Virus record (IMG/VR): IMGVR_UViG_3300026521_000003
Coordinates: 62,001-126,000 of that record
Strand: one strand, 5' to 3'
DNA: 64,000 nucleotides
The translations under genes and the position numbers were made by a program. Shown here in pieces: positions 38,018 through 62,197 of the stretch (position 1 is the stretch's first letter; the number at the start of each line of letters is the position of its first letter). The notes under the pieces were generated by a model that had not been told where the DNA came from, ran no database searches, and saw only the letters and a list, made by a program, of their open reading frames with translations.

Positions 38018-38707
38018 TTATTTTTGTGAGAATGCATTAGATGTAGTAGCATTTGAATCATCAGTACCATCATCCACAGCAGTACCATAACTAAATGAAG
38101 GCATCCAAGTAGTAAAGTTAGCATATCTAATACCTAAGTTTACAGATGAAAGTCCAGCATCATCTGAATAATCTAAAGTACCAAAATCACAAGTCATTAC
38201 TACACACTTGTGATAATACCATGCCATTAATGCCGTACCATCACCACTTAGCTCTTCCGCAGTCATATTGAAAAAATATGCTGCTGCAGATTTAGCATGA
38301 TAATTTGTATCAAAGTTTGCTTGTTTTTGTAATTGTGTTTGAGCTGCTCTTGAAACTGCTCCATCTAATGAGTCATCTAACTCAACTGTTGCTTGATCTT
38401 GAGTTTTTCTACCAGCAAAATAAACTTTTGAATTTAGCTTAGGTACTTCAATCTCAGCAAATGTAACATTAGGTTTTGTTATTGTTTTAACATGATGTCC
38501 TACAGCTCTAAATACACCAAATTTAACTCTAAATCTATGCATTAATTTTACTTCAACATCCTCTACATTATGGGCTCCATCACCACCAACATTAAATGCT
38601 GCTGATCCAAATTCATTTCCACCAGTAGCTTTAGAATCTGCAAATGCATCTGCTGCTGCCGCAGAAGTTGCTACTGCAGTTCCATTATCTCCATTATACC
38701 ATGCCAT
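38018..38707 (-). CDS. gp19: Tail tube protein, gp19-like
   Basis: HRFRVKF, VKTITKPNVTFAEIE, VYFAGR, TVELDDS, FGTLDYS and GIRYAN. Strong RBS and late promoter. Confidence 0.88.
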   Translation of the reverse strand: MAWYNGDNGTAVATSAAAADAFADSKATGGNEFGSAAFNVGGDGAHNVEDVEVKLMHRFRVKFGVFRAVGHHVKTITKPNVTFAEIEVPKLNSKVYFAGRKTQDQATVELDDSLDGAVSRAAQTQLQKQANFDTNYHAKSAAAYFFNMTAEELSGDGTALMAWYYHKCVVMTCDFGTLDYSDDAGLSSVNLGIRYANFTTWMPSFSYGTAVDDGTDDSNATTSNAFSQK

Positions 38708-40339: not shown

Positions 40340-43300
40340 TTATCTATATTGAGCTTTACTTATATCTCTTTGACGTATATTATCACTAGAATCAACATCA
40401 CGTTTATATGATTTTTGGGCTATTTTATTCTGTTTTGTAAATTCTTTTGATGTATTATTCAGATGACCTAGTTGTTGATTTTGAACTTGTAACATTTGTT
40501 CTAATAATTTTTCAACGTTTACTAAAGTGGTTGTTTCAGCGTTTTCATTATTTATTGTTGTTGAACTACTAGAACTATTATAATTTTGAGTTGAAACATT
40601 ATTTAGTTTTGGACTTGTACTAATACCAGATGTACCAGTCCCAGATATAATTCCTGATGTTGGTTTTGATGTTTCAGATGAACTAGAATTCATTACTAAT
40701 TGATCAAATATAGATACCAATGATTCTGGTATTACTTTCTCATTAGTATGAACAATACCTGCTGCACCTTTCATACCGGTTAAAGTTTCTAATACTGGAT
40801 CTGGTGTTGATGGTGTTTTCCCTCCTTCTGCAAATCCAAAAAAATCACCGACGGATGATGCAACTGAAGAAACTGCACCTCCAATTCCACCAGATTCTCC
40901 ACCAAAAAGACTATTTGCTGCAGAAGATATACCACCCAATAATCCTCCACCAGATTCTCCACCACCTAATAGCCCTCCTAGTGCACCACTAAGACCGTCC
41001 ATAATACCACCAAAGTCAAATGAACCTAATGCATCAGTTAAACCTTCCCCCATACTTCCAGTAATACTATTAAATGTTTCAGTTATACTACCATCACCAT
41101 CAAATGCATCCATAACAGAATCCAAAGGACCACCTTCTACTGTAAATGATGTGAATGTATTAGATAGATTACTTGTTAAAGAGCTAGTTACATTTGTTAG
41201 AGCTTCACCAATACTAGTATCACCATTTAGGACTCCAGCTATGTTTGTAGATACTAAATCACCGGCACTAGATAAACTAGATGTAATCCCTCCTAACGCA
41301 TTGGTTAATGTATTAGGTAATACATTTGTTAAAGAGCTAGTTACATTTGTTAGAGCTTCACCAATACTAGTATCACCATTTAGGACTCCAGCTATGTTTG
41401 TATTTAAAGAAGTTCCTACTTCTTTAATACTTGAACCAACATTTTGTACTATATTTTGAACTGAAGTAGGTAACAATGATGTTACATTTTGTGCTAAATT
41501 TTGTAATGATTGAGATGCAGTTCCACCAATATTTGTTAATGCTTCAGTTATTGTACTCTTTCCAGTAAAAATATTAGTTATGCCATCTACAACACTTTTA
41601 CCAATATCAACTTGTCCACCAAAAAATGATGTAGCCGTCGCACCTAAACCTGTTGCCAAGACACCTAATTTATCTTTAAGTATATTTTTAACATCATCAA
41701 GACTATTCACCATAGCATTTGCTTGCTTATCATCAATACCTTCTTTTGTTGTCTTTTTAACTTGTTCATCTGCTATTTGTTTTTGTTTTGATATAATTTC
41801 TTTTTGATTATTACGTTCTTTTATTTCTGTTAATTTATTACTAGTTTCAGACGATTTATTAGGTATTATTTTATCATAAGCATTACTAACTGCACCCTTA
41901 ACAGAATCAACCGGTGTACTAATAAACCCTTTAATACTTTCTGTAATTTTACTAAAAACATTGGTCTCTGTTTTTTTAGATTCTTTTTTAGTTGTTTTTT
42001 TATTATTTGATGTTGAGAAATCCAATAATTTATAAAATGATTCAACAGTATTTGCAGGTATAACAAATTCTCCAGGACCATGTACTCCAGCAATACCATT
42101 AGGTTCTGCTGAACCGGTTGGATCTATTAATTGTGTTAATGCTTTATTTGCTGCATCACCAGTATATCCACCTTTTGCTTTTGCTTCTACTTTTATAGTT
42201 TTTGCATCCGCACCATTTTCAAGTGCTTTAATAAGTCTGTCTAACTCATCCTCATATTTACCTTCCAGTCCCGATTCAGACCGCATAGCTTTTAATTCTT
42301 TTAAACCTATTTCCCCAGAATTTAAACCCTCTTGAACTTTAGTAGTATTTAGGGTGTTATATCCATAATCATCAACCCAATATCCTTTCTTTTCAAGATC
42401 GGCAGATGATTTTTCTTCTTCAGAATCTGGACCCATACCAGGAATCATTCCAAGAAGCCAATTTATAGCATCACTTATAGGTTTTGTTACAACATCATAT
42501 AAACCACTAAATATTTTTTTACCCGCATCTACAATACCATTAAACATATTTTTAAACATATCTAAAAGACTCATATCGGGATCTGTAAAATATGCTACAA
42601 CAGCTTTAAATGGTGCAGTAACTAAATCTATAAACCCACTAAAAATATTTTTAACTCCATCTACAATACCTTGAAATGTTGCTTTTATATCAGTACCGAA
42701 AATACCATCAACATAATCAATTATAAATTTAAATGGGGCTGTTACTAAATCAGTAAAACCATTAAATAATGATATTACTCCATTTTTTACACCATCAAAT
42801 ATCTGTTTTACAGCATCTATGAATGATAAATCGCCGGAAATCCATGCAGAAATAGCCAAAAATGGAGCTTTAACTATATCAATAAATCCACCCAAAATAC
42901 CAGAAACGGCATTTACTATATTATTAAAATAACCTTTTATTGCATCTATAAATGAATTAAAAACAGCTGTAAATTTGGTTCCAAAATAATCATCAACTAA
43001 TCCAAATACCCAATCAAAAGGTTTTCGTACTAGATCAACAATTCCATTTAAAGCACCAATAATAGCATTCTTAACATTAGTAAAAATATCCTTTACCATA
43101 GTATCAAATGATATTTCACCTTTGAAAAATGACATTATCGATTTAAAAGGTGCAGTTATAAGTTCATAAAATGTACCAAAGATATTTTTAATTGCTGTAA
43201 ATGAATTTCTAAATGTACCAAGCATATCTGTACCAAAAATACTATCAACCATACCCAATACAGCTTTTAATGGTATTGTAATTATATCAAGAAATCCATC

Positions 43301-46300
43301 AAAAATTGTTTTGATACCTTCACCAATTTTACTAAAATTACCAGTAAAAATTCCAGTAATAATTTGGAAAAAACCATTAATATATTTAAATATACCTTTA
43401 AAAACATCACCAACAACACTTAATAATGGTTGTATTTTATTAAAAATCCATCCAACTACTTCACCGATTTTAGAAAAGAATGCACCTAACGCATTACCTA
43501 ATTCATTAAATGTAGCAGTAATACCCATTTCATCCATCTTTTTACCTAACCATGAGAAAGCCTCTGCTACTTTATGAGCTACTACTTGTCCATCCAACAT
43601 ACCAAATGATAATGCTTCTAGTGCTCCTCCTACAGCTGATGCGGATTTTTGAGTTAAAGAAGCTCTAGCTTCTAATTTATTACCGTATTCATCTTCCCAT
43701 TGACCATTAACAAAAACTGCTTTTCCTGTTTTTGATAATGATTCAGCATATTTTTTCCCCTCTTTGGTATTTTTTGTTAATAATTTTTTTTGAGGCTCTA
43801 AATCTTTTCCAAACCATTCGGCAGCTTTACCCCAACCTTCCATTCCACCTTGGAGTGCTTTCATTGCCGCTCCAGCAAGAAAGGCAGGACCCATCATACT
43901 TTTTAAACCACCACCTAAAGTCTTCAATCCACCAGAAACAGTTTTTTTAAACCCTGTCCATTTTTTTCCTGCTTTTTGCCAAAAATTACCATCAGGTTCT
44001 AATACTGTCGCAGCATTATTTGTGTCTTTACCCTTAGCAAATGAGGTTTTAATATTTTTAAAAGTATTACCAATACTCAACCCGACATTAGAAAAAACGT
44101 CTTTTATTTTTCCAAATCCAGCTGATAACGATTCTTTAAATCCCCCAAAAATATTTGATAATCCAGAAACAGCTCCTTTTCCTGCTTTACCAATAAACCC
44201 TATTGTTTTTTTAGTAGCACTACCTATATTTGATGCTATTGTTTTTAAAGTATTAGGGAAATTCATTAAACTTTTTGTAAATTTACCTATACCTATTGCT
44301 ATACCTTTTGTGACATTCCATCCAGCAATACCTATTAAATTGGCAGTTTTCATTATACCGGATCCAAGTTTTGATATAGTATTGTCAATTAAATCAAATG
44401 CTCCAGAACTTTTTAATAGTTTTGCTAAAAATAATCCTCCCATAACCATTGATATAGTTTCAATATTTTCAGTTAAAAATGATAATGCTTTATTTAAATA
44501 AGGGAGTACGTCATTAACTAATTCCATTGTTTTATTTTGAAATGCATATAATGCTGCTGTTGCTTTTTGTTCCACTCTATCTCTAGTATTTTCAACACCC
44601 GTACTGTTAGCTTTTATCTGATTTTGTAAATAATTTGGATCTTCAATCGTTTTTTTAACATCATTATGAGTTAAAGCACTACCGTCTTTTTTTGTTAAAC
44701 CTGACATAGTTAATTTTTTACCATCTTTAGCCAATTTGATTTGTTCTTTTATTAAATCGGCATTGGAAATTTTAAAAGCATCTCTTTGATATTCTGCATA
44801 CTTTTTAGGATCATTCTTTTTTAATTCCGCAAGTTGAGATTCACTCATCTTAGAAATAAGCATCATTTGTTTTTTGGTTTCTTCTGCATTTTGATCATTT
44901 GCTATAAGTTGGTCTAACATCTTATTATAACCATCTTTATTAGTAGCACCCATTGAAACTAATAGTTTATCTAAATCAGCAGTTGATTTTTCTCCTTTTG
45001 AACGTGCTATAAATTCTTTCGTCCCCTCTTTTTGTGCAGCTATTGTTGCAGCAACACCTTGTTGGTTTATTTTGTTTGCTACTTCAGAATCTTTAGCCCA
45101 TTCTTTACTTTGTTGTAACATTTGGAATTTCGCTTTCTCACTTGCTGTTGCTGTACCATCATTAACTTTTTTAGCTAAATCAGCATACATAACTTGTTGT
45201 GCTTGAACATTAACTTGTTGCATCTGTAAAAATAATTTTTTATCTTTTTCACTTAATCCTTCAAATCCTACAAGCGATGCTTTAGCTGCTAAATCATTTG
45301 CTTCTTTTTGATTCATACCAATAGTATCTAACCCCTGTTTTAAGAAGTCAGCACCCTTTCCACCCATTTGATTCATCATATTCATATCTTTAATAGAATC
45401 AGCAATTGCTTCTGGGTCTGCAGCAATATTAGATACCTTCTCTAAAGTAGCTTTTATGTATTCTTCTGAAAAACCAGCTTGTTTCATACCAGATGCCATA
45501 CCACCCATTGTTTTTTCTATTTCTTTAGCAATATCAGCATTCATACCTTTTGTTATTAATTTTGAATTTTCATGTATAGCTTTAATTTGTTCAAGAGCGT
45601 ACTTATTACTAACACCCATTGTTTTTGCTAAAGCCGAAGTTTGAGCAGCTAAGTCATCCATCATACCTGCTGGAGATTGACCTTCTAAGACAGTTTTTAG
45701 TGAGTTAAGAGCTTCCATCTGATTTTCAGCATACTCTTTACCCATTGTACGTTCTGATAATCTTTGTTTAACTGCAACTTTTTCCATCTCTACACGATTA
45801 TTATTTAAGGAAACATTAAATGTAGTTTGTAAGCTATCAGACAAGGCTTTTAATCCAGCTGGATCTATCAATGAATTAATATGCATATTTTGGAGATCCG
45901 ATACTAGATTACCACTACTACTACCCATCTCTCTAGATATATTTAACTGGTCATGATACATACCTATAGCTTTTGTAGCCATTGCCATTGCAGCTCCTAA
46001 TGCTGCTACAGGTGCACCAACACTACTAATCATTCTTATAAAATCATTTCCAACATTTCTAACTTCACCAAATGATTTCATTCCGTCACCAACATTATCA
46101 AATGCAGATGATAAATGTCCAGCAGCATCACTTACTTTATCTAATTGATTAGAAAAGCCTTGCGCTCCTTGAGATAAAATATCAAATTTAGATTTTGATT
46201 TTTGTACCGCTTCATCTAATTTTTTTTGAGATTTTGATTCATTTTTAGTATTTTGTTTGTCTACTTTTTTTTTAGTTTTACCTTTTATTGCAGGACCCAA

Positions 46301-47032
46301 TTCATTTATAACTTTAGCGTTTTCTTCTTGTAACTTTATAACTGTCGATAATGAATCTTGAGTTGATTTTAGATTTTCTGAAGCTTCTATAATTTCAGAT
46401 TTATCGGCTCCATCAGCAACTAAACGTTCTATTAATTTAGTTTGTCGTTTAGTTTCTAATTCCAATCTATTTTGCTCAGCTATCAAATCATCACTCAAAT
46501 CATCTATACTATCTATAAATGATGTAGTGTCACCATTAAAAGTAATATTACTACCATCTACATTATAAATATTTTCAATATTTTCTTTCAAACCATCATC
46601 AATCAAACTATCAAGTGTAAATGAATTGTCCCCTAATGATATATTATTTGTAGTTTCTGTTTTTTCTTTAGGTTTACCTAAATTTGCAACATAAGAACCC
46701 AGCATTTCTTTTGCTTCATTACTATTTGAATTTTTACGTTCTTCAGCAAGCTCTTTAATAAATTCAGCAAATTTTTCATCATCTTGATCATTTGCAAAAT
46801 CATGGGTAACTGAATTTAATTCTTTTTTTAACTCATCAGCAAAATTTTCTTCAATCTGATTCAGTCTATTAATAATTTCACTTGGATTAATATCATCATT
46901 AAGAAAATCATCTCGTAAATTTATTTTTTCGCTTGACTGCCCTGATAATTTTTCAACAAGAGTATAGAGCTTCGACATTTTCTCTGATACATTTTTATAA
47001 TCAATTATTTGACTACCTTTATTAAATTCCAT
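40340..47032 (-). CDS. Tape measure protein (2230 aa)
   Basis: Long Ala/Gly/Lys-rich helical protein with periodic F/W repeats, hydrophobic stretches and two (FA)xGG...VHxxExVIP motifs typical of tape measure C-termini. Confidence 0.88.
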   Translation of the reverse strand: MEFNKGSQIIDYKNVSEKMSKLYTLVEKLSGQSSEKINLRDDFLNDDINPSEIINRLNQIEENFADELKKELNSVTHDFANDQDDEKFAEFIKELAEERKNSNSNEAKEMLGSYVANLGKPKEKTETTNNISLGDNSFTLDSLIDDGLKENIENIYNVDGSNITFNGDTTSFIDSIDDLSDDLIAEQNRLELETKRQTKLIERLVADGADKSEIIEASENLKSTQDSLSTVIKLQEENAKVINELGPAIKGKTKKKVDKQNTKNESKSQKKLDEAVQKSKSKFDILSQGAQGFSNQLDKVSDAAGHLSSAFDNVGDGMKSFGEVRNVGNDFIRMISSVGAPVAALGAAMAMATKAIGMYHDQLNISREMGSSSGNLVSDLQNMHINSLIDPAGLKALSDSLQTTFNVSLNNNRVEMEKVAVKQRLSERTMGKEYAENQMEALNSLKTVLEGQSPAGMMDDLAAQTSALAKTMGVSNKYALEQIKAIHENSKLITKGMNADIAKEIEKTMGGMASGMKQAGFSEEYIKATLEKVSNIAADPEAIADSIKDMNMMNQMGGKGADFLKQGLDTIGMNQKEANDLAAKASLVGFEGLSEKDKKLFLQMQQVNVQAQQVMYADLAKKVNDGTATASEKAKFQMLQQSKEWAKDSEVANKINQQGVAATIAAQKEGTKEFIARSKGEKSTADLDKLLVSMGATNKDGYNKMLDQLIANDQNAEETKKQMMLISKMSESQLAELKKNDPKKYAEYQRDAFKISNADLIKEQIKLAKDGKKLTMSGLTKKDGSALTHNDVKKTIEDPNYLQNQIKANSTGVENTRDRVEQKATAALYAFQNKTMELVNDVLPYLNKALSFLTENIETISMVMGGLFLAKLLKSSGAFDLIDNTISKLGSGIMKTANLIGIAGWNVTKGIAIGIGKFTKSLMNFPNTLKTIASNIGSATKKTIGFIGKAGKGAVSGLSNIFGGFKESLSAGFGKIKDVFSNVGLSIGNTFKNIKTSFAKGKDTNNAATVLEPDGNFWQKAGKKWTGFKKTVSGGLKTLGGGLKSMMGPAFLAGAAMKALQGGMEGWGKAAEWFGKDLEPQKKLLTKNTKEGKKYAESLSKTGKAVFVNGQWEDEYGNKLEARASLTQKSASAVGGALEALSFGMLDGQVVAHKVAEAFSWLGKKMDEMGITATFNELGNALGAFFSKIGEVVGWIFNKIQPLLSVVGDVFKGIFKYINGFFQIITGIFTGNFSKIGEGIKTIFDGFLDIITIPLKAVLGMVDSIFGTDMLGTFRNSFTAIKNIFGTFYELITAPFKSIMSFFKGEISFDTMVKDIFTNVKNAIIGALNGIVDLVRKPFDWVFGLVDDYFGTKFTAVFNSFIDAIKGYFNNIVNAVSGILGGFIDIVKAPFLAISAWISGDLSFIDAVKQIFDGVKNGVISLFNGFTDLVTAPFKFIIDYVDGIFGTDIKATFQGIVDGVKNIFSGFIDLVTAPFKAVVAYFTDPDMSLLDMFKNMFNGIVDAGKKIFSGLYDVVTKPISDAINWLLGMIPGMGPDSEEEKSSADLEKKGYWVDDYGYNTLNTTKVQEGLNSGEIGLKELKAMRSESGLEGKYEDELDRLIKALENGADAKTIKVEAKAKGGYTGDAANKALTQLIDPTGSAEPNGIAGVHGPGEFVIPANTVESFYKLLDFSTSNNKKTTKKESKKTETNVFSKITESIKGFISTPVDSVKGAVSNAYDKIIPNKSSETSNKLTEIKERNNQKEIISKQKQIADEQVKKTTKEGIDDKQANAMVNSLDDVKNILKDKLGVLATGLGATATSFFGGQVDIGKSVVDGITNIFTGKSTITEALTNIGGTASQSLQNLAQNVTSLLPTSVQNIVQNVGSSIKEVGTSLNTNIAGVLNGDTSIGEALTNVTSSLTNVLPNTLTNALGGITSSLSSAGDLVSTNIAGVLNGDTSIGEALTNVTSSLTSNLSNTFTSFTVEGGPLDSVMDAFDGDGSITETFNSITGSMGEGLTDALGSFDFGGIMDGLSGALGGLLGGGESGGGLLGGISSAANSLFGGESGGIGGAVSSVASSVGDFFGFAEGGKTPSTPDPVLETLTGMKGAAGIVHTNEKVIPESLVSIFDQLVMNSSSSETSKPTSGIISGTGTSGISTSPKLNNVSTQNYNSSSSSTTINNENAETTTLVNVEKLLEQMLQVQNQQLGHLNNTSKEFTKQNKIAQKSYKRDVDSSDNIRQRDISKAQYR
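41173..41402. repeat. 77-bp identical direct repeat pair in the tape measure gene (41173-41249 and 41326-41402)
   Basis: Both encode NIAGVLNGDTSIGEALTNVTSSLT; offset 153 bp, in frame. Confidence 0.92.
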
Positions 47033-48327: not shown

Positions 48328-49359
48328 TTATTTTAGTATTTTACTACTAGCCTTCATATGTTTACCTTTGTTTCTCATATGTTTAAGAATACCAGGTATT
48401 AAAACAAATTGTAAATATTCATCTGAATATGCTTTACCAGTAGCTTGTTTATGAGCTTTTGCAGCTTTCTTAACATGCTTTCTTAATTTACCATTTAATT
48501 TATCCATAGATAAATCTTTGATATCTTCACCACCATGTAGTTTTGGATTTTTCAAATAGTATTTTTTTGCTTCTTTAGCTTTTTTCTGTGCACATTGAAT
48601 ATCACCCGGTTTACATCTAGTAAGTTTTTTCTCAATTAAAACAGTTGCTTCTTTTGCTTTTCTTAATAATTCAGCACCCGCTTCGTCTTCTGCTTCTGCT
48701 AATATTTCATCATTAACTTGTGCCATTTCTTCTAATAAATCTTCAGTATCTTCATAATCATCTAAAAATTCCATTAATGATTCACCTTCATAATCTTCAG
48801 AATCAAAGTCAATCACACCTTCATTTATAGCTTCTTCTAATTTATTAGAAATTTCTTCTACCGTTTCTACTAAATCCATAGTTTCAACAGAATCATCAAT
48901 ATCTAAATCTTTTGCAGCTTCAACAATATCAAATACCATTTCAGCTGGTAATTTTTCAACTGTTTCTTCACCTAACATCTCTGTTAATTTATTTGTTACA
49001 ATCGATAAAAGAGTTACTGATGCCGTTTCATCTTCTTCTAAAAATTCTATATCAATATTTTCAATATTTTCTAATGCTTCTTCAATTATTAATTCTGGTT
49101 TAGATGCATTTTTTCTAGCAGATTCTAAAATAATATTTAAAATTTTTGAACCATCAACTGTTTCAGATATAATTTTAGCATTTTCATCTGTTTGCGTTTC
49201 TACAAATTCAACTAAGTAATCTAAATGATGTACTATATCAAATTCTATTTCGCTCCCCTCTTCTAAAATTGTTTCAATAAGATCCAATTTAGATTCAGAT
49301 AATGTTCCTAACTTTGACTCAATGTCTTCAACGATTTCAACGATCTCAACAAACTTCAT
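48328..49359 (-). CDS. Putative prohead core / internal head protein: acidic (I/L/V)xE-rich N-terminus and basic C-terminus (343 aa)
   Basis: Dense LxE/IxE motifs over the first 240 aa, then a Lys-rich tail; late promoter TATAAATA at 49400-49393. Confidence 0.55.
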   Translation of the reverse strand: MKFVEIVEIVEDIESKLGTLSESKLDLIETILEEGSEIEFDIVHHLDYLVEFVETQTDENAKIISETVDGSKILNIILESARKNASKPELIIEEALENIENIDIEFLEEDETASVTLLSIVTNKLTEMLGEETVEKLPAEMVFDIVEAAKDLDIDDSVETMDLVETVEEISNKLEEAINEGVIDFDSEDYEGESLMEFLDDYEDTEDLLEEMAQVNDEILAEAEDEAGAELLRKAKEATVLIEKKLTRCKPGDIQCAQKKAKEAKKYYLKNPKLHGGEDIKDLSMDKLNGKLRKHVKKAAKAHKQATGKAYSDEYLQFVLIPGILKHMRNKGKHMKASSKILK

Positions 49360-49509
49360 ATTTCTTTCTCCTATTTTCGGTTAATCTATTTTTATTTATA
49401 CACTACTAACCATATTTTTTATTTATTTATTACTTTTTTTTAAAAATCGTAGTTTTTTACTAATAAATAAAATAAATCTATAAAATATAGAGAAATAAGG
49501 AGATCTTTT

Positions 49510-50292
49510 ATGAGTGCGATTAATCCACTATTGCAAAGTCAAGAACCAACGTATTATGATACGGAATTACCATCACATGGTATCCCATATGAAAATATCG
49601 ATAATATTTTTGAACCAGGAACTATCCATGATGGTATTGTTCAAGTTAGACCATTAACTACCAAAGACGAACTTATTTGGACGGATCAAAAATTAGTTGA
49701 GGATTTAAAAGCCCCAATAATTATTTTAAAGAATACAGTTTTGGGTTTAAAGAATCCAGAGTTATTAATTCGAGCTGATGTTGAAGCATTATTACTCCAA
49801 GCAAGAGTTTTAACATATGGTAAAATGACAAAAGTTAGTTGGACCTGTTCAGAGTGTTCAAATACTAATGAAATTACGGTAGACTATACAAAATTACCTA
49901 TTAAAAAATTAAATTCGTTCGATGAGCTTATGTTAAAATTTAAAAATTATGAAATATTTATGATTCCTATTATATTTAAAGAAGCAGTTGAAATACAAAA
50001 AGTTAATGATAATGATATTTCCGAGCAATTAGATAAAATCGTTAGTTGTATTCAACGAGTAAATGTGATCGATCAATCAGGTGAAAAACAAACCGTTCAA
50101 GATAAACAATTTATAGCTCAATGGGTAGAACAAGTTAATCCTAAAGATTTTAAATTTATTATAGACCATTTTACTGAAGTTAATAAAATTGGTACTGTAT
50201 TAGATTTAGATGTTAAATGTGCACATTGTGCATATAAAGAGAAAACTGATGTAGTGGTGGATATAACCAATTTTTTCTCCGAAGAGGATTGA
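49510..50292 (+). CDS. Baseplate hub assembly / tail assembly chaperone, gp26-like
   Basis: YDTELPSHG, VRPLTTKDE, D.EALLLQARVLTYG, and two CxxC pairs (CSEC, CAHC). Confidence 0.8.
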   Translation: MSAINPLLQSQEPTYYDTELPSHGIPYENIDNIFEPGTIHDGIVQVRPLTTKDELIWTDQKLVEDLKAPIIILKNTVLGLKNPELLIRADVEALLLQARVLTYGKMTKVSWTCSECSNTNEITVDYTKLPIKKLNSFDELMLKFKNYEIFMIPIIFKEAVEIQKVNDNDISEQLDKIVSCIQRVNVIDQSGEKQTVQDKQFIAQWVEQVNPKDFKFIIDHFTEVNKIGTVLDLDVKCAHCAYKEKTDVVVDITNFFSEED

Positions 50293-50327
50293 AAAATTTC
50301 ACAGAACGTGATGTTATACCAATCCTC
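50256..50327 (+). promoter_or_regulatory. Candidate -1 programmed ribosomal frameshift signal
   Basis: GGTGG at 50256-50260; slippery T_TTT_TTC at 50271-50277 in the reading frame; 8-bp stem GAGGATTG (50284-50291) / CAATCCTC (50320-50327) starting 6 nt downstream. Confidence 0.65.
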
Positions 50328-50507
50328 AAATCTTTAAAAACTCAACAAGATAATATTTTATTTGAAATTTGGGCTCTAAATTATCATATGAGTACTCAAC
50401 GTAGTGAAACTATGTTGATGACACCCGATGAACGAAAATTTTGGATTGAAGAGTTAATTAAACAACGTGAAAAAGAAAATGAAGAAATTAAAAAATCTTC
50501 TAAATAG
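50289..50507 (+). CDS. gp51-like / chaperone-extension ORF, probably expressed as a -1 frameshift fusion
   Basis: EIWALNYHM....E.M.MTPDERKFWIEELIKQ.EKE pattern. Only a TTG start with no properly spaced RBS; it is the -1 frame of the upstream ORF. Confidence 0.7.
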   Translation: MKNFTERDVIPILKSLKTQQDNILFEIWALNYHMSTQRSETMLMTPDERKFWIEELIKQREKENEEIKKSSK

Positions 50508-50509
50508 TA

Positions 50510-50535
50510 CAACCAAAGAAATTAATCTTTGGTTG
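50510..50535. terminator. Terminator hairpin between convergent genes
   Basis: CAACCAAAGA/TCTTTGGTTG 10-bp stem between stops at 50507 and 50550. Confidence 0.7.
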
Positions 50536-50549
50536 GTTTATTAATCAAT

Positions 50550-53117
50550 TTAGCTAACTGATATAGGAATTATTAGGTGTTCCATATAAGGACTTGGTTT
50601 AATTGCAACTAAAGCATTAAGTTTAGATTGTGCTAATACAATCGGAGGATTATATTCTTCTGTTACACTTGCTTCTGCTTCTGCTAAACAACTATTAACA
50701 ACATATGTATTTAAATATGATTGGAAATCACTTTGAATTCTATCCCATAATGCAGGAATACTTAAATCAAATAAGTAATTTTTACCAGCCATTGTTAAAT
50801 CTCTTACAATTTGCTCAATCATAAGCATTGTTCCTACTTTTTGCATAGGTGATGTTTTACTATAAGTTGTTTTTTGACCCATAATATGAATACCTGTTGT
50901 TAATCCTTTAGTTATCGGATTTATACCCATTCCATAAAGTCTATCTCTCATTACTTGTGATAATTTAATATCTTTAGAAACAGCTACAGCATCATAGATA
51001 ACACCTCTTACTGTTCCTGCAGGGGCATCACAAATTTTACCATTTTTCTGCGTTAATGCCATTGATTGTAATGCAGAACCACTTGGTGGTACAGCTACAA
51101 CTTTTTTAGTCATAGTATCTAATTTCATAACCCATGGGTAATAAATAGACTCAAATTTAGAATTGTGATTACCACTAGTTCTCCAATTAATAACTGCTTG
51201 TGCTGTTAAATTTGGAGTATCAATAATACAATGAAAATCTCTTCTATTTTCAGCTAATGAAACCATTTCACCACTAACAGCACCATATTGTGAAAAATAA
51301 GGACATGCTAATGCTTTATAAGCAAATTCTTCAAAGTTTTGAACAGCCCATACCCCTGTTTGATGTGCAACAGATCCAGCAATATATGGTATCAATTTTT
51401 CATCATTTTTATAATCATCTTCTGTAAACATATCAGCTCCACCCATAAGTGGCATAGGAAGTTCAGCTCCAGTATCAGGATCAATATCATTAACTGGGTA
51501 TGTTAAGCTATTTGTTGGATCAACTGGAGTAGCAATACTAATAAGTACATTTTTAAATGTTAGTTGATCAGCTTTATATGATGCTGAAACACCATTTTCA
51601 ATTTCAACTATATCTGAACCACGCTCTTCATAGATATGAATATTAACTTCATCAATAGAAACATCATAATCAACAGAAACTTGATAATTATTACCCCATT
51701 CACCTGGTGAAATAGCATCAACTCTAAATGCTTGGTTAGCTGGATCTTTCTTAATATTATTCATTTTTTCAATAATTTCAGCAAGTTTTTCAGCTGCATT
51801 AGCAAATTGTACAGTAACATTATAATTTCTACCAGTACCTTCTATTGCAGGTAATGTAGCAGGACCATCGGAAACTCGTGGACAATCTTTCTTAAATAAT
51901 TCACCTAATAAGAAAACATCTTCATCTGAATTTAAGAAATAATTGTGTGTTTCAACATCTCCACCTAAAGGCATAACATAATTTCTAATTTCACCAGCTG
52001 TAAAATCTCTTTCTACACCATCAACATCTCTTAATGTGATGATTGTTGAATCACCAAGCGCCATATTGATTATTACAGGATATGCTGTTGCGTATGCTAC
52101 AGATCCATTAGAACAATCTACATTATTATAAGTACCCCAATCTATTAATTTATCTGAATATACTACTTGCTTCATAGTATCTAATGTTAATCCTGAAAGT
52201 ACCAAAATACCATTATCACGCACATATTTTTGTATATTTAGTGGTAATTGAACATATTCATTTTTTGCCATTGTATAGTTATCTGATTCTTCTCTAAATT
52301 CTGCTCTAGCTGCATCATATTTTTTGAAACCAGCTAAATTAAATATTGGAGCCCAAGCTGATTCTATAGCATTTGATCCACCAGCAAAATTTACTGTAGC
52401 TTTTAATTTTTCAATTAAAATAGTTGATGTAAATGGTTCTCTCTCAAATATAAACATAAAGTCTTCAGTTTCATTTCCATTTACTAGTTCATTAAATTGT
52501 TTAACACATTCATCAGATACTGGATCATATAAATATTCACCAAAATGATTAACTTGGTCTGCATCATCAATAGCAGTATATACTCTTTGTGTTGCAAAAT
52601 CTACATTAAATCTATTTTTTCCTGGAACAGGAATAAATTCTGGGTATGGACTTGTTTCAGTTTCAGCCCATTCTTCAGGAGTTAATGGATTCTTCATTTC
52701 TATAAGAACCTGCATTGTAACTACACCATCAAAATTTATAGGATTTATATCTTGAAAAACAGCTCTTAATGAATTCCCAAACTCACCACTTGTTTTATAT
52801 CTAATTGTTAATAATGGCTTAGCATCTCTAGCCTTAATTGTTGTTTCAGCAAAACCTGGAGTATCAGCTCCTGCTCTAATTATCCATGCACTAGAACCTT
52901 GTTTAAAAAATTCATAAGCTGCAAACATTCCATATTGTTTTTTTGAAAGATCTGCTTCTCCAAAAATTTGTAAAGCCTCTTGAGCTGAACCACATAGATA
53001 CGGTTGATTAACCGGACCTTTACTTGCAAATGTTACGATTGTTGGAATAAATGATGAATCTCCACCAGGATATGATGGGGAATTATCAATTAATTTTGTT
53101 TCTACACCTACTAACAT
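50550..53117 (-). CDS. gp18: Tail sheath protein, gp18-like (855 aa)
   Basis: KGPVNQPYL, AISPGEWGN, ENRRDFHCIIDTP, YYPWVMKLD, VAVPPSG, APAGTVRG, LY..GINPI, GQKT and IKPSPYMEHLII. Confidence 0.95.
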   Translation of the reverse strand: MLVGVETKLIDNSPSYPGGDSSFIPTIVTFASKGPVNQPYLCGSAQEALQIFGEADLSKKQYGMFAAYEFFKQGSSAWIIRAGADTPGFAETTIKARDAKPLLTIRYKTSGEFGNSLRAVFQDINPINFDGVVTMQVLIEMKNPLTPEEWAETETSPYPEFIPVPGKNRFNVDFATQRVYTAIDDADQVNHFGEYLYDPVSDECVKQFNELVNGNETEDFMFIFEREPFTSTILIEKLKATVNFAGGSNAIESAWAPIFNLAGFKKYDAARAEFREESDNYTMAKNEYVQLPLNIQKYVRDNGILVLSGLTLDTMKQVVYSDKLIDWGTYNNVDCSNGSVAYATAYPVIINMALGDSTIITLRDVDGVERDFTAGEIRNYVMPLGGDVETHNYFLNSDEDVFLLGELFKKDCPRVSDGPATLPAIEGTGRNYNVTVQFANAAEKLAEIIEKMNNIKKDPANQAFRVDAISPGEWGNNYQVSVDYDVSIDEVNIHIYEERGSDIVEIENGVSASYKADQLTFKNVLISIATPVDPTNSLTYPVNDIDPDTGAELPMPLMGGADMFTEDDYKNDEKLIPYIAGSVAHQTGVWAVQNFEEFAYKALACPYFSQYGAVSGEMVSLAENRRDFHCIIDTPNLTAQAVINWRTSGNHNSKFESIYYPWVMKLDTMTKKVVAVPPSGSALQSMALTQKNGKICDAPAGTVRGVIYDAVAVSKDIKLSQVMRDRLYGMGINPITKGLTTGIHIMGQKTTYSKTSPMQKVGTMLMIEQIVRDLTMAGKNYLFDLSIPALWDRIQSDFQSYLNTYVVNSCLAEAEASVTEEYNPPIVLAQSKLNALVAIKPSPYMEHLIIPISVS

Positions 53118-61912: not shown

Positions 61913-62197
61913 ATGACAAAAGCAGATATGGTAGTTCAACTACAAGAAATTATTGGTGAAGAAAAAGTTTCAAAAGCAGAATGTGAAAGAATCTGGAATG
62001 GTTTAATCGAAATTATTGCAGAAGAGGTAAAAGATGGTGGTGAAGTAAAATTTGGTTCACTATTTAAAGTTTATAAAAAACATAAAAATGCTAGAAAAGT
62101 AAGAAATCCGAGAACTGGCGAAACTTTCATGAAAGAAGCTAGAGATGAACTAGGATGTAAAGTTATGAGAGAAGGTAAATACCTTATTCAAGACTAG
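61913..62197 (+). CDS. hup: HU/IHF-family DNA-binding protein
   Basis: MTKADMV, EVKFGSLFKV and ARKVRNPRTGE arm motif. Confidence 0.92.
   Translation: MTKADMVVQLQEIIGEEKVSKAECERIWNGLIEIIAEEVKDGGEVKFGSLFKVYKKHKNARKVRNPRTGETFMKEARDELGCKVMREGKYLIQD

Follow-up and report, generated by a model that had tools for sequence, protein, structure and literature searches.

In this study, we report that a tail-assembly gene of a deep-sea giant phage very probably makes a short and a long protein from one message by a programmed -1 ribosomal frameshift, although no protein, ribosome-profiling or reporter evidence exists for any member of the family. The gene was found in a stretch of 64,000 nucleotides (hereafter the window; positions 62,001 to 126,000 of IMG/VR record IMGVR_UViG_3300026521_000003), and its product belongs to the T4 gp26/gp51 family (Pfam PF12322). 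The same unannotated signal was present in all 138 complete related loci, whereas phage T4 makes the equivalent pair (gp26 and gp51) from two separate genes. No report of a frameshift in gp26 or gp51 genes was found in the literature, subscription-only papers being outside the search and the PRFect paper being also checked, nor was any database record found that reports it.

Organization of the locus

All the sequence features listed in the original prediction, which proposed a -1 frameshift fusing a gp26-like and a gp51-like ORF, were present. The annotation of the locus is provided in Table 1. ORF1 ends in AAT TTT TTC TCC GAA GAG GAT TGA, and its slippery heptamer is in the X_XXY_YYZ register. 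The -1 frame is closed by TGA at 50247-50249 and is open from 50250 to the stop at 50505-50507. The predicted products are of 260 aa and 256+76 = 332 aa (...NFF then LRRGLK...), respectively. The unit has one Shine-Dalgarno sequence and no terminator between ORF1 and ORF2, while a terminator-like hairpin lies after ORF2 (two such sites were found, against 0.3 expected from shuffles).

Table 1. Features of the two-ORF unit and of its surroundings (positions in the window).
Position	Strand	Feature	Remarks
49497..49502	+	Shine-Dalgarno AAGGAG of ORF1	7 nt before the ATG
49510..50292	+	ORF1, hub-assembly protein of the T4 gp26/gp51 family	260 aa, short zero-frame product; two CxxC pairs (C113/C116, C237/C240)
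50256..50260	+	SD-like GGTGG	10 nt upstream of the heptamer; possible clade-specific stimulator
50271..50277	+	Slippery heptamer T_TTT_TTC	AAT TTT TTC = N254 F255 F256
50278..50283	+	Spacer between heptamer and stem	6 nt
50284..50327	+	Predicted stimulatory hairpin	8-bp stem, GAGGATTG (50284-50291) with CAATCCTC (50320-50327); 28-nt loop holding a small inner tcac/gtga helix (50299-50302 with 50308-50311)
50277..50507	+	-1 frame extension	76 codons plus stop (LRRGLKNF...KKSSK); C-terminal module of the predicted 332-aa long product
50289..50291	+	TTG, nominal start of the 72-aa ORF2	Inside the stem, abutting GAGGA; probably not used
50290..50292	+	Zero-frame stop TGA of ORF1	4 codons after the heptamer
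50510..50535	.	Bidirectional terminator-like hairpin (10 bp)	Ends the two-ORF unit, between it and the convergent sheath gene
50550..53117	-	Tail sheath gene (855 aa)	Convergent with the unit; phrog_23, E = 3.3e-45
40340..47032	-	Tape measure protein gene (2230 aa)	2.5 kb away; phrog_1272, E = 3.8e-24, plus ten further tape-measure PHROGs
38018..38707		Tail tube gene	

ORF1 matched PF12322 (E = 1.6e-20; 74.2 bits against a gathering cut-off of 24.5), with residues 40-256 aligned to profile positions 10-218 of 219, and phrog_150 (E = 3.3e-25, profile positions 13-232 of 282), which confirms that the description of this ORF as gp26-like was right. Its four cysteines were nearly invariant among relatives. 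The AF2 model of ORF1 had a mean pLDDT of 85, and only the last 4 residues, after the FF motif, were disordered. The model of the extension had a mean pLDDT of 90.7, with a predicted helical hairpin (H10-38, H42-46, H50-75). By contrast, ORF2 alone gave only a sub-threshold DUF6760 hit (E = 0.025, in 2 of 18 members) and weak PHROG hits, which were considered noise. A DNA search of the locus against GenBank phages gave nothing, and only protein-level relatives at 21-23% identity were found there. PDB sequence and fold searches of both domains gave nothing significant, and Rfam had no match at the site.

It must be noted that a heptamer alone is unremarkable in this window, whose G+C content is 27%. 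There were 300 in-frame X_XXY_YYZ sites in ORFs of at least 100 codons, of which 14 lay within 15 codons of a stop. However, only the one described here leads into a -1 frame that runs far past the stop (71 codons; the next best were 24 and 16, in spurious ORFs). In addition, the sequence is not an assembly error, since DNA contigs from two other samples were identical over 49300-50700 and a metatranscriptome contig spanned 50200-50700 with no difference.

Conservation of the frameshift signal

The comparative evidence for a real -1 programmed ribosomal frameshift is strong. An in-frame T_TTT_TT(C/T/A) was located 1-12 codons before the stop in 138 of 138 complete loci, which formed 28 clusters at 60% identity and included Rak2-like jumbo phages, T4-like cyanophages and Aeh1. 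The one apparent exception, related locus L018, is a tandem duplicate whose second copy carries the cassette. Among the 28 cluster representatives the heptamer was TTTTTTC in 26 and TTTTTTT in 2. Interestingly, the preceding codon always ended in T (AAT, GAT, AGT, TCT, GCT, CAT, ACT), whether it encoded N, D, H, S (both TCT and AGT), A or T. The joint probability of this codon choice under each gene's own codon usage was about 10^-11.6, so that the heptamer is conserved at the nucleotide level beyond what the protein requires.

The -1 frame was open for 58-79 codons from the site in all loci, while the +1 frame closed after 1-29 codons. In at least 11 jumbo-phage loci and in many cyanophage loci there was no ATG, GTG or TTG before codon 20-37, yet the peptide was conserved from the first codon after the slip site, and the module could be aligned from that codon across all jumbo clades. 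The TTG of the window was replaced by TTA in the close relatives L050 and L051 and by CTG in L006, and in those loci the first possible start was at codon 20-34.

A hairpin 5-7 nt downstream of the heptamer recurred with different sequences, and the spacer was of 5-7 nt in nearly all clades. That of the window had an MFE of -16.0 kcal/mol (z = -3.3), and in 14 close relatives 92.9% of cells were paired, against 30-60% in slid registers. Covariation in the window's own clade is nevertheless thin, with one compensatory pair, and the stem arms are also constrained by two reading frames. An 11-bp stem of the same geometry in a sister clade had 87.7% of cells paired and 5 compensatory pairs, and 0 of 500 shuffles reached its score. 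XacN1, Atu_ph07 (z = -7) and S-WAM1 (z = -6.3) also fold, whereas several Rak2-like loci fold weakly downstream, with z between -1.5 and +1. The mean z was -2.4, and 17 of the 28 clusters were below -2. With respect to the SD-like GGTGG, it was confined to the window's clade, where it also encodes Val-Val, and was absent at this position in the other jumbo-phage clades. Cyanophage and Aeh1 genes have GAGG/AGGA at -14 to -12, where it also encodes conserved E/R-G-L. Tested as a general stimulator, the upstream SD-like element is not conserved.

In attention to these data, we consider it very probable that ORF1 and ORF2 form one recoded gene. In this model, most ribosomes translate ORF1 to its TGA and make a 260-aa zinc-ribbon protein, while a fraction of them pause with the tRNA-Phe pair on UUU-UUC, held by the hairpin, slip one base back on U_UUU_UUC and continue in the -1 frame, appending the 76-residue module. 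The two products would share their N-terminal 256 residues and be made in a fixed ratio. The slip itself, its efficiency and the chaperone role of the products in this phage are inferred. No C-terminal fusion was found among the 150 best of 4348 family representatives or among 54 close homologues, which fits a need for both forms.

Relationship with T4 gp26 and gp51

Both T4 gp26 (E = 8.8e-64) and T4 gp51 (E = 3.9e-52, residues 1-201) matched PF12322, and they are paralogues (BLASTP E = 2e-6). After the position of the FF motif, gp51 carries a C-terminal module of ~49 residues that hit phrog_634. The cyanophage and Aeh1 extensions hit phrog_634 at 1.9e-30 and 1.1e-13, respectively, as well as the C-terminal part of phrog_150, and the cyanophage extension profile aligned to gp51 residues 207-247 at E = 1.6e-4. 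T4 gp51 is thus a natural in-frame version of the long product, its module being collinear with the cyanophage and Aeh1 extension. For the extension of the window, however, similarity to the gp51-type module is only marginal. The hhalign comparison gave E = 0.11 in the expected register, with a shared M-x-P-x-E-R motif, and only the window clade exceeded all 693 decoys, and narrowly (8.3-10 bits against a best decoy of 8.1). The extension profile against whole T4 gp51 aligned to the wrong region (residues 30-64) with a probability of 2.6-3.6%, and Foldseek found the 57-aa PX29 protein at E = 1.4. The designation of ORF2 as gp51-like may be right in a refined sense: it would correspond only to the last ~50 residues of gp51, the N-terminal 200 residues of which are a paralogue of gp26, and the whole trans-frame product would therefore be the gp51 counterpart.

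T4 and its close relatives make the equivalent pair from two paralogous genes without recoding, gene 26 giving the short form and gene 51 the long form with the module fused in frame. Both products are hub-assembly chaperones that act next to the tape measure protein gp29. T4 gp26 keeps the FF motif but with non-slippery codons (GAG TTC TTT), and is followed by gene 25. T4 gene 26 also makes a second product (26') by internal initiation. The extension of the window is longer (76 aa) than the gp51 module. In the tree, T-even gp26 and gp51 grouped together apart from all frameshift-type genes (support 96/94).

If the slip is real, a core gene of T4-like cyanophages, Aeh1-like phages and Rak2-like jumbo phages is mis-annotated, in a family with 4348 representative clusters; in database records the extension is missing, truncated or called a separate small ORF. 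T4 gp26 and gp51 would then become the two-gene equivalent of a one-gene recoded pair, which suggests why both are needed for hub assembly and predicts that their ratio matters, and the family would be a clean natural example of recoding and gene duplication as interchangeable ways of making an N-coterminal protein pair. More tentatively, the PF12322 pair could be the T4-type and jumbo-phage counterpart of the G/GT tape-measure chaperones, with -1 frameshifting from one gene as the ancestral and by far the commonest solution and with recoding replaced by gene duplication in the T-even lineage. This possibility, which the data do not exclude but which we do not consider established, would also mean that a recoded gene is mis-annotated in many hundreds or more of phage genomes.

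Alternative explanations

Transcriptional slippage, in which RNA polymerase adds one U in the T6 run, would give exactly the same fusion without any shift of the ribosome. The site is indeed a homopolymer run (T6, or T7 in XacN1 and in the group of related locus L147), which the conserved preceding T also lengthens. Nevertheless, this explanation is unlikely. The run appears short in comparison with bacterial slippage sites, which would usually be of 9 or more; the last position is C in 26 of 28 clusters although TTT would keep Phe and lengthen the run; and the conserved element is an RNA hairpin with the geometry of ribosomal frameshift stimulators. DNA and metatranscriptome contigs showed only T6, but this point is weak because contigs hide minor variants.

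It is likewise improbable that these are two ordinary genes, with ORF2 translated from its TTG or by termination-reinitiation coupling and the heptamer being a by-product of a conserved Phe-Phe motif in an AT-rich genome. In agreement with this view, the TTG overlaps the stop, an ATG overlaps or follows the stop in some lineages (121Q TAATG, Atu_ph07 ATGA, many cyanophages at codon 4-5), where separate initiation could therefore also occur, and the small ORF is annotated separately as 121Q gp595 and XacN1 ORF316. Moreover, Pseudomonas phage Cygsa01 has no heptamer and its module has its own ATG, and T4 gp26 shows that the FF motif is conserved for protein reasons. Against it, the TTG is lost in close relatives and lacks spacing for an SD, many loci have no early start codon although the peptide before it is conserved, and in XacN1 the -1 frame is open and conserved for 19 codons ahead of the annotated ATG. 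Codon choice at and before FF is also constrained beyond the needs of the protein, whereas T4 keeps FF with TTC TTT. Finally, that ORF2 is an unexpressed leftover, as the lack of a significant family hit might suggest, is very unlikely and already contradicted by the conservation of the module in length and sequence across 28 clusters. In addition, the module is confidently predicted to fold and may correspond to part of an essential T4 protein, gp51.

Comparison with known frameshift systems

Programmed -1 frameshifting in tail genes is well known for the lambda G/GT-type tail assembly chaperones, as well as P2 E/E+E' and Mu gp41/42 (Xu, Hendrix and Duda 2004). As in that system, the predicted slip takes place on an X_XXY_YYZ heptamer a few codons before the stop of a small tail-morphogenesis gene near the tape measure gene, the two predicted products share the N-terminus, the long one carries an extra C-terminal module, and no in-frame fusions were found among close relatives. 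The T4 counterparts are assembly factors, with gp51 being absent from the virion (PMC3004832), and one GenBank record names a gp51 homologue 'tape measure protein assembly chaperone', which is only indirect evidence for such a role. The link to G/GT made in the original prediction is, however, one of mechanism and logic, and homology is not shown. The Pfam hits of 23 members comprised only PF12322 and zinc ribbons, with no tail assembly chaperone family among them, no PDB sequence hit was obtained, and the best fold match to the HK97 chaperone 2ob9 had E = 1.5, TM 0.48 and probability 0.23; this match and the 'tail assembly chaperone' entries found in BFVD are leads only. Furthermore, the protein is larger (260 aa) and has four conserved cysteines, a strong conserved downstream hairpin is present, and the gene is not located between the tube and tape measure genes in the same orientation but is a lone two-ORF unit on the opposite strand, between the sheath gene and a block that ends with the tape measure gene.

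With respect to the E. coli dnaX -1 frameshift, the window has a heptamer, a hairpin 6 nt downstream and an SD-like GGTGG 10 nt upstream, the latter not conserved outside the window's clade. In dnaX the shifted frame ends almost at once and gives the shorter product, while here the shift gives the longer predicted product.

Sequence features of the locus

The sequence features proposed in the original prediction, namely a slippery heptamer near the end of ORF1, an open −1 frame continuing into the next ORF, a downstream stem with a small inner helix and an upstream Shine-Dalgarno-like element, were all found in the sequence, and their coordinates are provided in the table below together with those of other loci examined. 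ORF1 is preceded by AAGGAG and ends AAT TTT TTC TCC GAA GAG GAT TGA, with the heptamer in the X_XXY_YYZ register. The −1 frame is closed by a TGA shortly before the heptamer, but it then runs open and contains the 72-aa ORF2. The two arms of the stem are GAGGATTG and CAATCCTC; the stem begins 6 nt after the heptamer and its 28-nt loop holds the small tcac/gtga helix (MFE −16.0 kcal/mol, z = −3.3). A GGTGG sequence lies 10 nt upstream of the heptamer. In addition, a bidirectional terminator-like hairpin follows ORF2, while none separates the two ORFs.

It must be noted that a heptamer alone means little in this window, given its G+C content of 27%; 300 in-frame heptamers were found in long ORFs. 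However, of the 14 located near a stop codon, only this one opens into a long −1 frame, which extends 71 codons past the stop. The sequence is not an assembly artefact, as DNA contigs of two other samples are identical and a metatranscriptome contig spans positions 50200–50700 without a difference.

Coordinates of the features of the locus and of related loci
Feature	Location	Strand	Remarks
Tape measure protein gene	window 40340-47032	-	2230 aa
Acidic protein gene	window 48328-49359	-	343 aa; no family hit
Intergenic region	window 49360-49509		150 nt, AT-rich
ORF1	window 49510-50292		260 aa
TGA closing the -1 frame	window 50247-50249
T_TTT_TTC heptamer	window 50271-50277		in frame
Stem	window 50284-50291 with 50320-50327		8 bp
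TTG of the 72-aa ORF	window 50289		in the -1 frame
Stop of the -1 frame	window 50505-50507
Terminator-like hairpin	window 50510-50535		bidirectional
Tail sheath gene	window 50550-53117	opposite to ORF1
-1 extension, cyanophage S-WAM1	L059:1369-1563		missing from the GenBank annotation
-1 extension, Aeromonas phage Aeh1	L060:1405-1578		missing from the GenBank annotation
-1 extension, Atu_ph07	L003:3822-4049		only the last 40 codons annotated
Tandem PF12322 paralogues	L018:1474-3219		viral contig
Hub gene and module, Pseudomonas phage Cygsa01	L062:472-1382		phiW-14-like
Genes 51 and 26, RB16	L153:1501-2794		tandem, one strand
Sister-clade hairpin	L011:2321-2375
T4 gene 26'	L046:3803-4090		C-terminal 95 residues of gene 26

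Gene identity and genomic context

ORF1 belongs to Pfam PF12322 (E = 1.6e-20) and to PHROG 150 'baseplate hub', in which it matches profile positions 13–232 of 282 and so stops short of the last ~50 positions. It has two conserved CxxC pairs and is predicted to fold confidently (pLDDT 85), with only the four residues after the FF motif being disordered. In contrast, ORF2 showed no significant family hit.

The neighboring genes on the other strand encode the tail sheath, a gp2-like DNA end protector, the tape measure protein, and the portal, tail tube, prohead protease and major head protein. The tape measure protein is very long, with internal repeats of about 70 residues in its C-terminal third and Gly-rich tracts near residue 2000. 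Divergently transcribed from the hub gene is a gene for an extremely acidic protein, with a long Glu/Asp/Ile/Leu-rich N-terminal part and a basic C-terminal tail, and the intergenic region between them presumably holds both promoters, although sigma-70-like matches were not enriched in the scanned region 49300–50700. The window is part of a 289,880-bp viral contig from a hydrothermal-vent metagenome. Near-identical DNA occurs in hydrothermal-vent and epibiont metagenomes, and parts of it in metatranscriptome libraries of vent and biofilm samples. Its nearest named relatives, at 21–23% identity, are the Rak2-like jumbo phages XacN1, 121Q/PBECO4 and Atu_ph07.

Comparative analysis of the candidate frameshift site

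We collected 146 loci encoding PF12322 genes outside the T-even group, comprising three GenBank jumbo phages, viral and metagenome contigs related to the window, and cyanophage S-WAM1 and Aeromonas phage Aeh1 with 87 viral contigs related to them. All 138 loci that are complete at the 3′ end share an in-frame T_TTT_TT(C/T/A) located 1–12 codons before the stop, a −1 frame open for 58–79 codons from that site, and a closed +1 frame. The other eight loci are cut by contig ends. The one apparent exception, the viral contig L018, is a tandem duplication: its first copy ends AAT TTC TTC TTA TAA, with neither slippery site nor extension, while the second has GAT TTT TTC and the open −1 frame.

The loci form 28 clusters at 60% identity, and among their representatives the heptamer is TTTTTTC in 26 and TTTTTTT in 2. 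The preceding codon is AAT, GAT, AGT, TCT, GCT, CAT or ACT. Interestingly, it always ends in T, even for Ser in both codon families and for Ala and Thr. Under each gene's own codon usage the joint probability is about 10^-11.6, which must be considered an upper bound on the significance because the clusters are related. T4 gp26 keeps the Phe-Phe motif but with GAG TTC TTT, which cannot slip, and is followed by gene 25.

With respect to the RNA structure, the 8-bp stem of the window is paired in 92.9% of cells in 14 close relatives, against 30–60% in slid registers, with one compensatory change (GAGGACTG with CAGTCCTC in the close relative L006). A sister clade has an 11-bp stem of unrelated sequence (GCCTAATTAG with CTAATTAGGC) and the same geometry, with a 5-nt spacer and a 28-nt loop. 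In this clade 87.7% of cells are paired, five pairs show compensatory changes, and none of 500 shuffles reaches the covariation score. In L011, both arms of the sister-clade hairpin are the same self-complementary decamer, CCTAATTAGG, so that each arm could pair with the other or fold on itself, and each encodes Leu-Ile-Arg in the −1 frame. MFE folds place a hairpin 5–7 nt after the heptamer in XacN1, Atu_ph07 (z = −7.0), S-WAM1 (z = −6.3), Aeh1, the loci L035 and L039 of our collection, and others. Over the 28 clusters the mean z is −2.4 and 17 are below −2, although several Rak2-like loci fold weakly. The Shine-Dalgarno-like element indicated in the original prediction is not general; it occurs in the window clade, and as GAGG/AGGA in cyanophage and Aeh1 genes, where it also encodes conserved residues. 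No matching family was found in Rfam.

Relationship to T4 gp26 and gp51

T4 gp51 (249 aa) is itself a PF12322 protein (E = 3.9e-52, residues 1–201); it covers PHROG 150 to its end, and its C-terminal part hits PHROG 634 'baseplate hub assembly catalyst'. T4 gp26 is also PF12322 (E = 8.8e-64) and ends at PHROG 150 position 235, and the two T4 proteins are paralogues (BLASTP E = 2e-6). The −1 extensions of S-WAM1 and Aeh1, which are unannotated in their records, hit PHROG 634 (1.9e-30 and 1.1e-13, respectively) and the C-terminal part of PHROG 150. Moreover, the cyanophage extension profile aligns to gp51 residues 207–247 (E = 1.6e-4), collinear from the FF-equivalent junction. Therefore, T4 gp51 is a natural in-frame version of the predicted long product, and gp26 corresponds to the short one. 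It should be noted that T4 gene 26 is annotated with a second, internally initiated product (26'), so that even the T4 short form comes as two proteins, in this case sharing the C-terminus.

The link is weaker for the longer extension of the window itself. Alignment with hhalign against the cyanophage module gives E = 0.11, in the expected register and with a shared M-x-P-x-E-R ... L-I motif, and in a decoy test only the five peptides of the window clade beat all 693 decoys, at 8.3–10 bits against 8.1. The model of the extension, a predicted helical hairpin (pLDDT 90.7), found only sub-significant matches, among them the 57-aa protein of the Aeh1-like phage PX29. For the window, we consider homology of the module likely, but it rests mainly on position and architecture.

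Phylogeny of the hub domain

None of 54 close homologues, and none of the 150 best of 4348 family representatives, carries a C-terminal extension, as expected if both forms are needed. A maximum-likelihood tree of 32 hub domains was built with five T-even-like phages having both genes, 20 frameshift-type genes chosen to represent the clusters, Cygsa01 and the first L018 copy, all other loci being left out as near-duplicates. The T-even gp26 and gp51 fall together on one side of a well-supported branch (96/94), the gp51 sequences form a clade (98/99), and the Aeh1 frameshift gene is the nearest outsider (89/87). The tree is unrooted; unless the root lies on the T-even branch, the frameshift gene is the older state and the 26/51 pair arose by duplication. 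In this regard, RB16 still has genes 51 and 26 in tandem after genes 48 and 54, overlapping by 8 nt, in the place that the single Aeh1 gene, which also follows gene 54, occupies, whereas in T4 they are divergent. The tandem paralogues of L018 look like an independent, partial step towards the T4-like two-gene state.

Predicted mechanism and alternative explanations

The best explanation is canonical −1 programmed ribosomal frameshifting on U_UUU_UUC, stimulated by the downstream hairpin, which would give a 260-aa product and a 332-aa product that share 256 residues; the slip itself is inferred from the sequence signals and their conservation. Transcriptional slippage on the T run is the main mechanistic rival. 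The short run, the conserved C at position 7 and the downstream position of the conserved hairpin argue against it, although a minor edited fraction cannot be excluded from contig-level RNA data.

As for independent initiation of the extension, the −1 peptide is conserved from its first codon (R-x-[RS]-L-[LI] in most clades and LRRGL in the window clade), yet at least 11 jumbo-phage loci and many cyanophage loci have no ATG, GTG or TTG before codon 20–37. In close relatives of the window the TTG is TTA (L050 and L051) or CTG (L006), and in XacN1 the frame is open and conserved for 19 codons before the annotated ATG. Nevertheless, some lineages do have an ATG that overlaps the stop (121Q, Atu_ph07), and both 121Q and XacN1 list the extension as a separate small hypothetical protein. 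In Cygsa01 the hub gene ends AGC ATT TTC ACC TAA TG, without any X_XXY_YYZ heptamer, and the gp51-type module is a 57-aa ORF whose own ATG overlaps the stop, the −1 frame being nevertheless open for 37 codons upstream. Therefore, separate expression exists as an evolutionary alternative, and it cannot be excluded as an additional route in some phages.

Function and comparison with known systems

The function is inferred from T4, in which gp26 and gp51 are listed as hub assembly chaperones; gp51 is essential, absent from particles and of unknown mechanism, and the hub contains the tape measure protein gp29 (PMC3004832). One GenBank record names a gp51 homologue 'tape measure protein assembly chaperone'. 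No mention of a frameshift in gp26 or gp51 genes was found in full-text searches, subscription-only publications excluded, or in the PRFect paper and jumbo-phage genome and proteome papers checked, and the nine records inspected (T4 and eight other phages) annotate no joined CDS there.

The original prediction pointed out a resemblance to lambda G/GT, and the logic of the two systems does match. However, membership in the tail assembly chaperone families is not supported: there is no Pfam hit to such a family, the fold match to the HK97 chaperone has E = 1.5, and the gene order differs. While −1 frameshifting in a phage tail-assembly gene is well known, this gene family as a host for it, its breadth, and the reading of T4 gp26 and gp51 as the split equivalent appear to be new.
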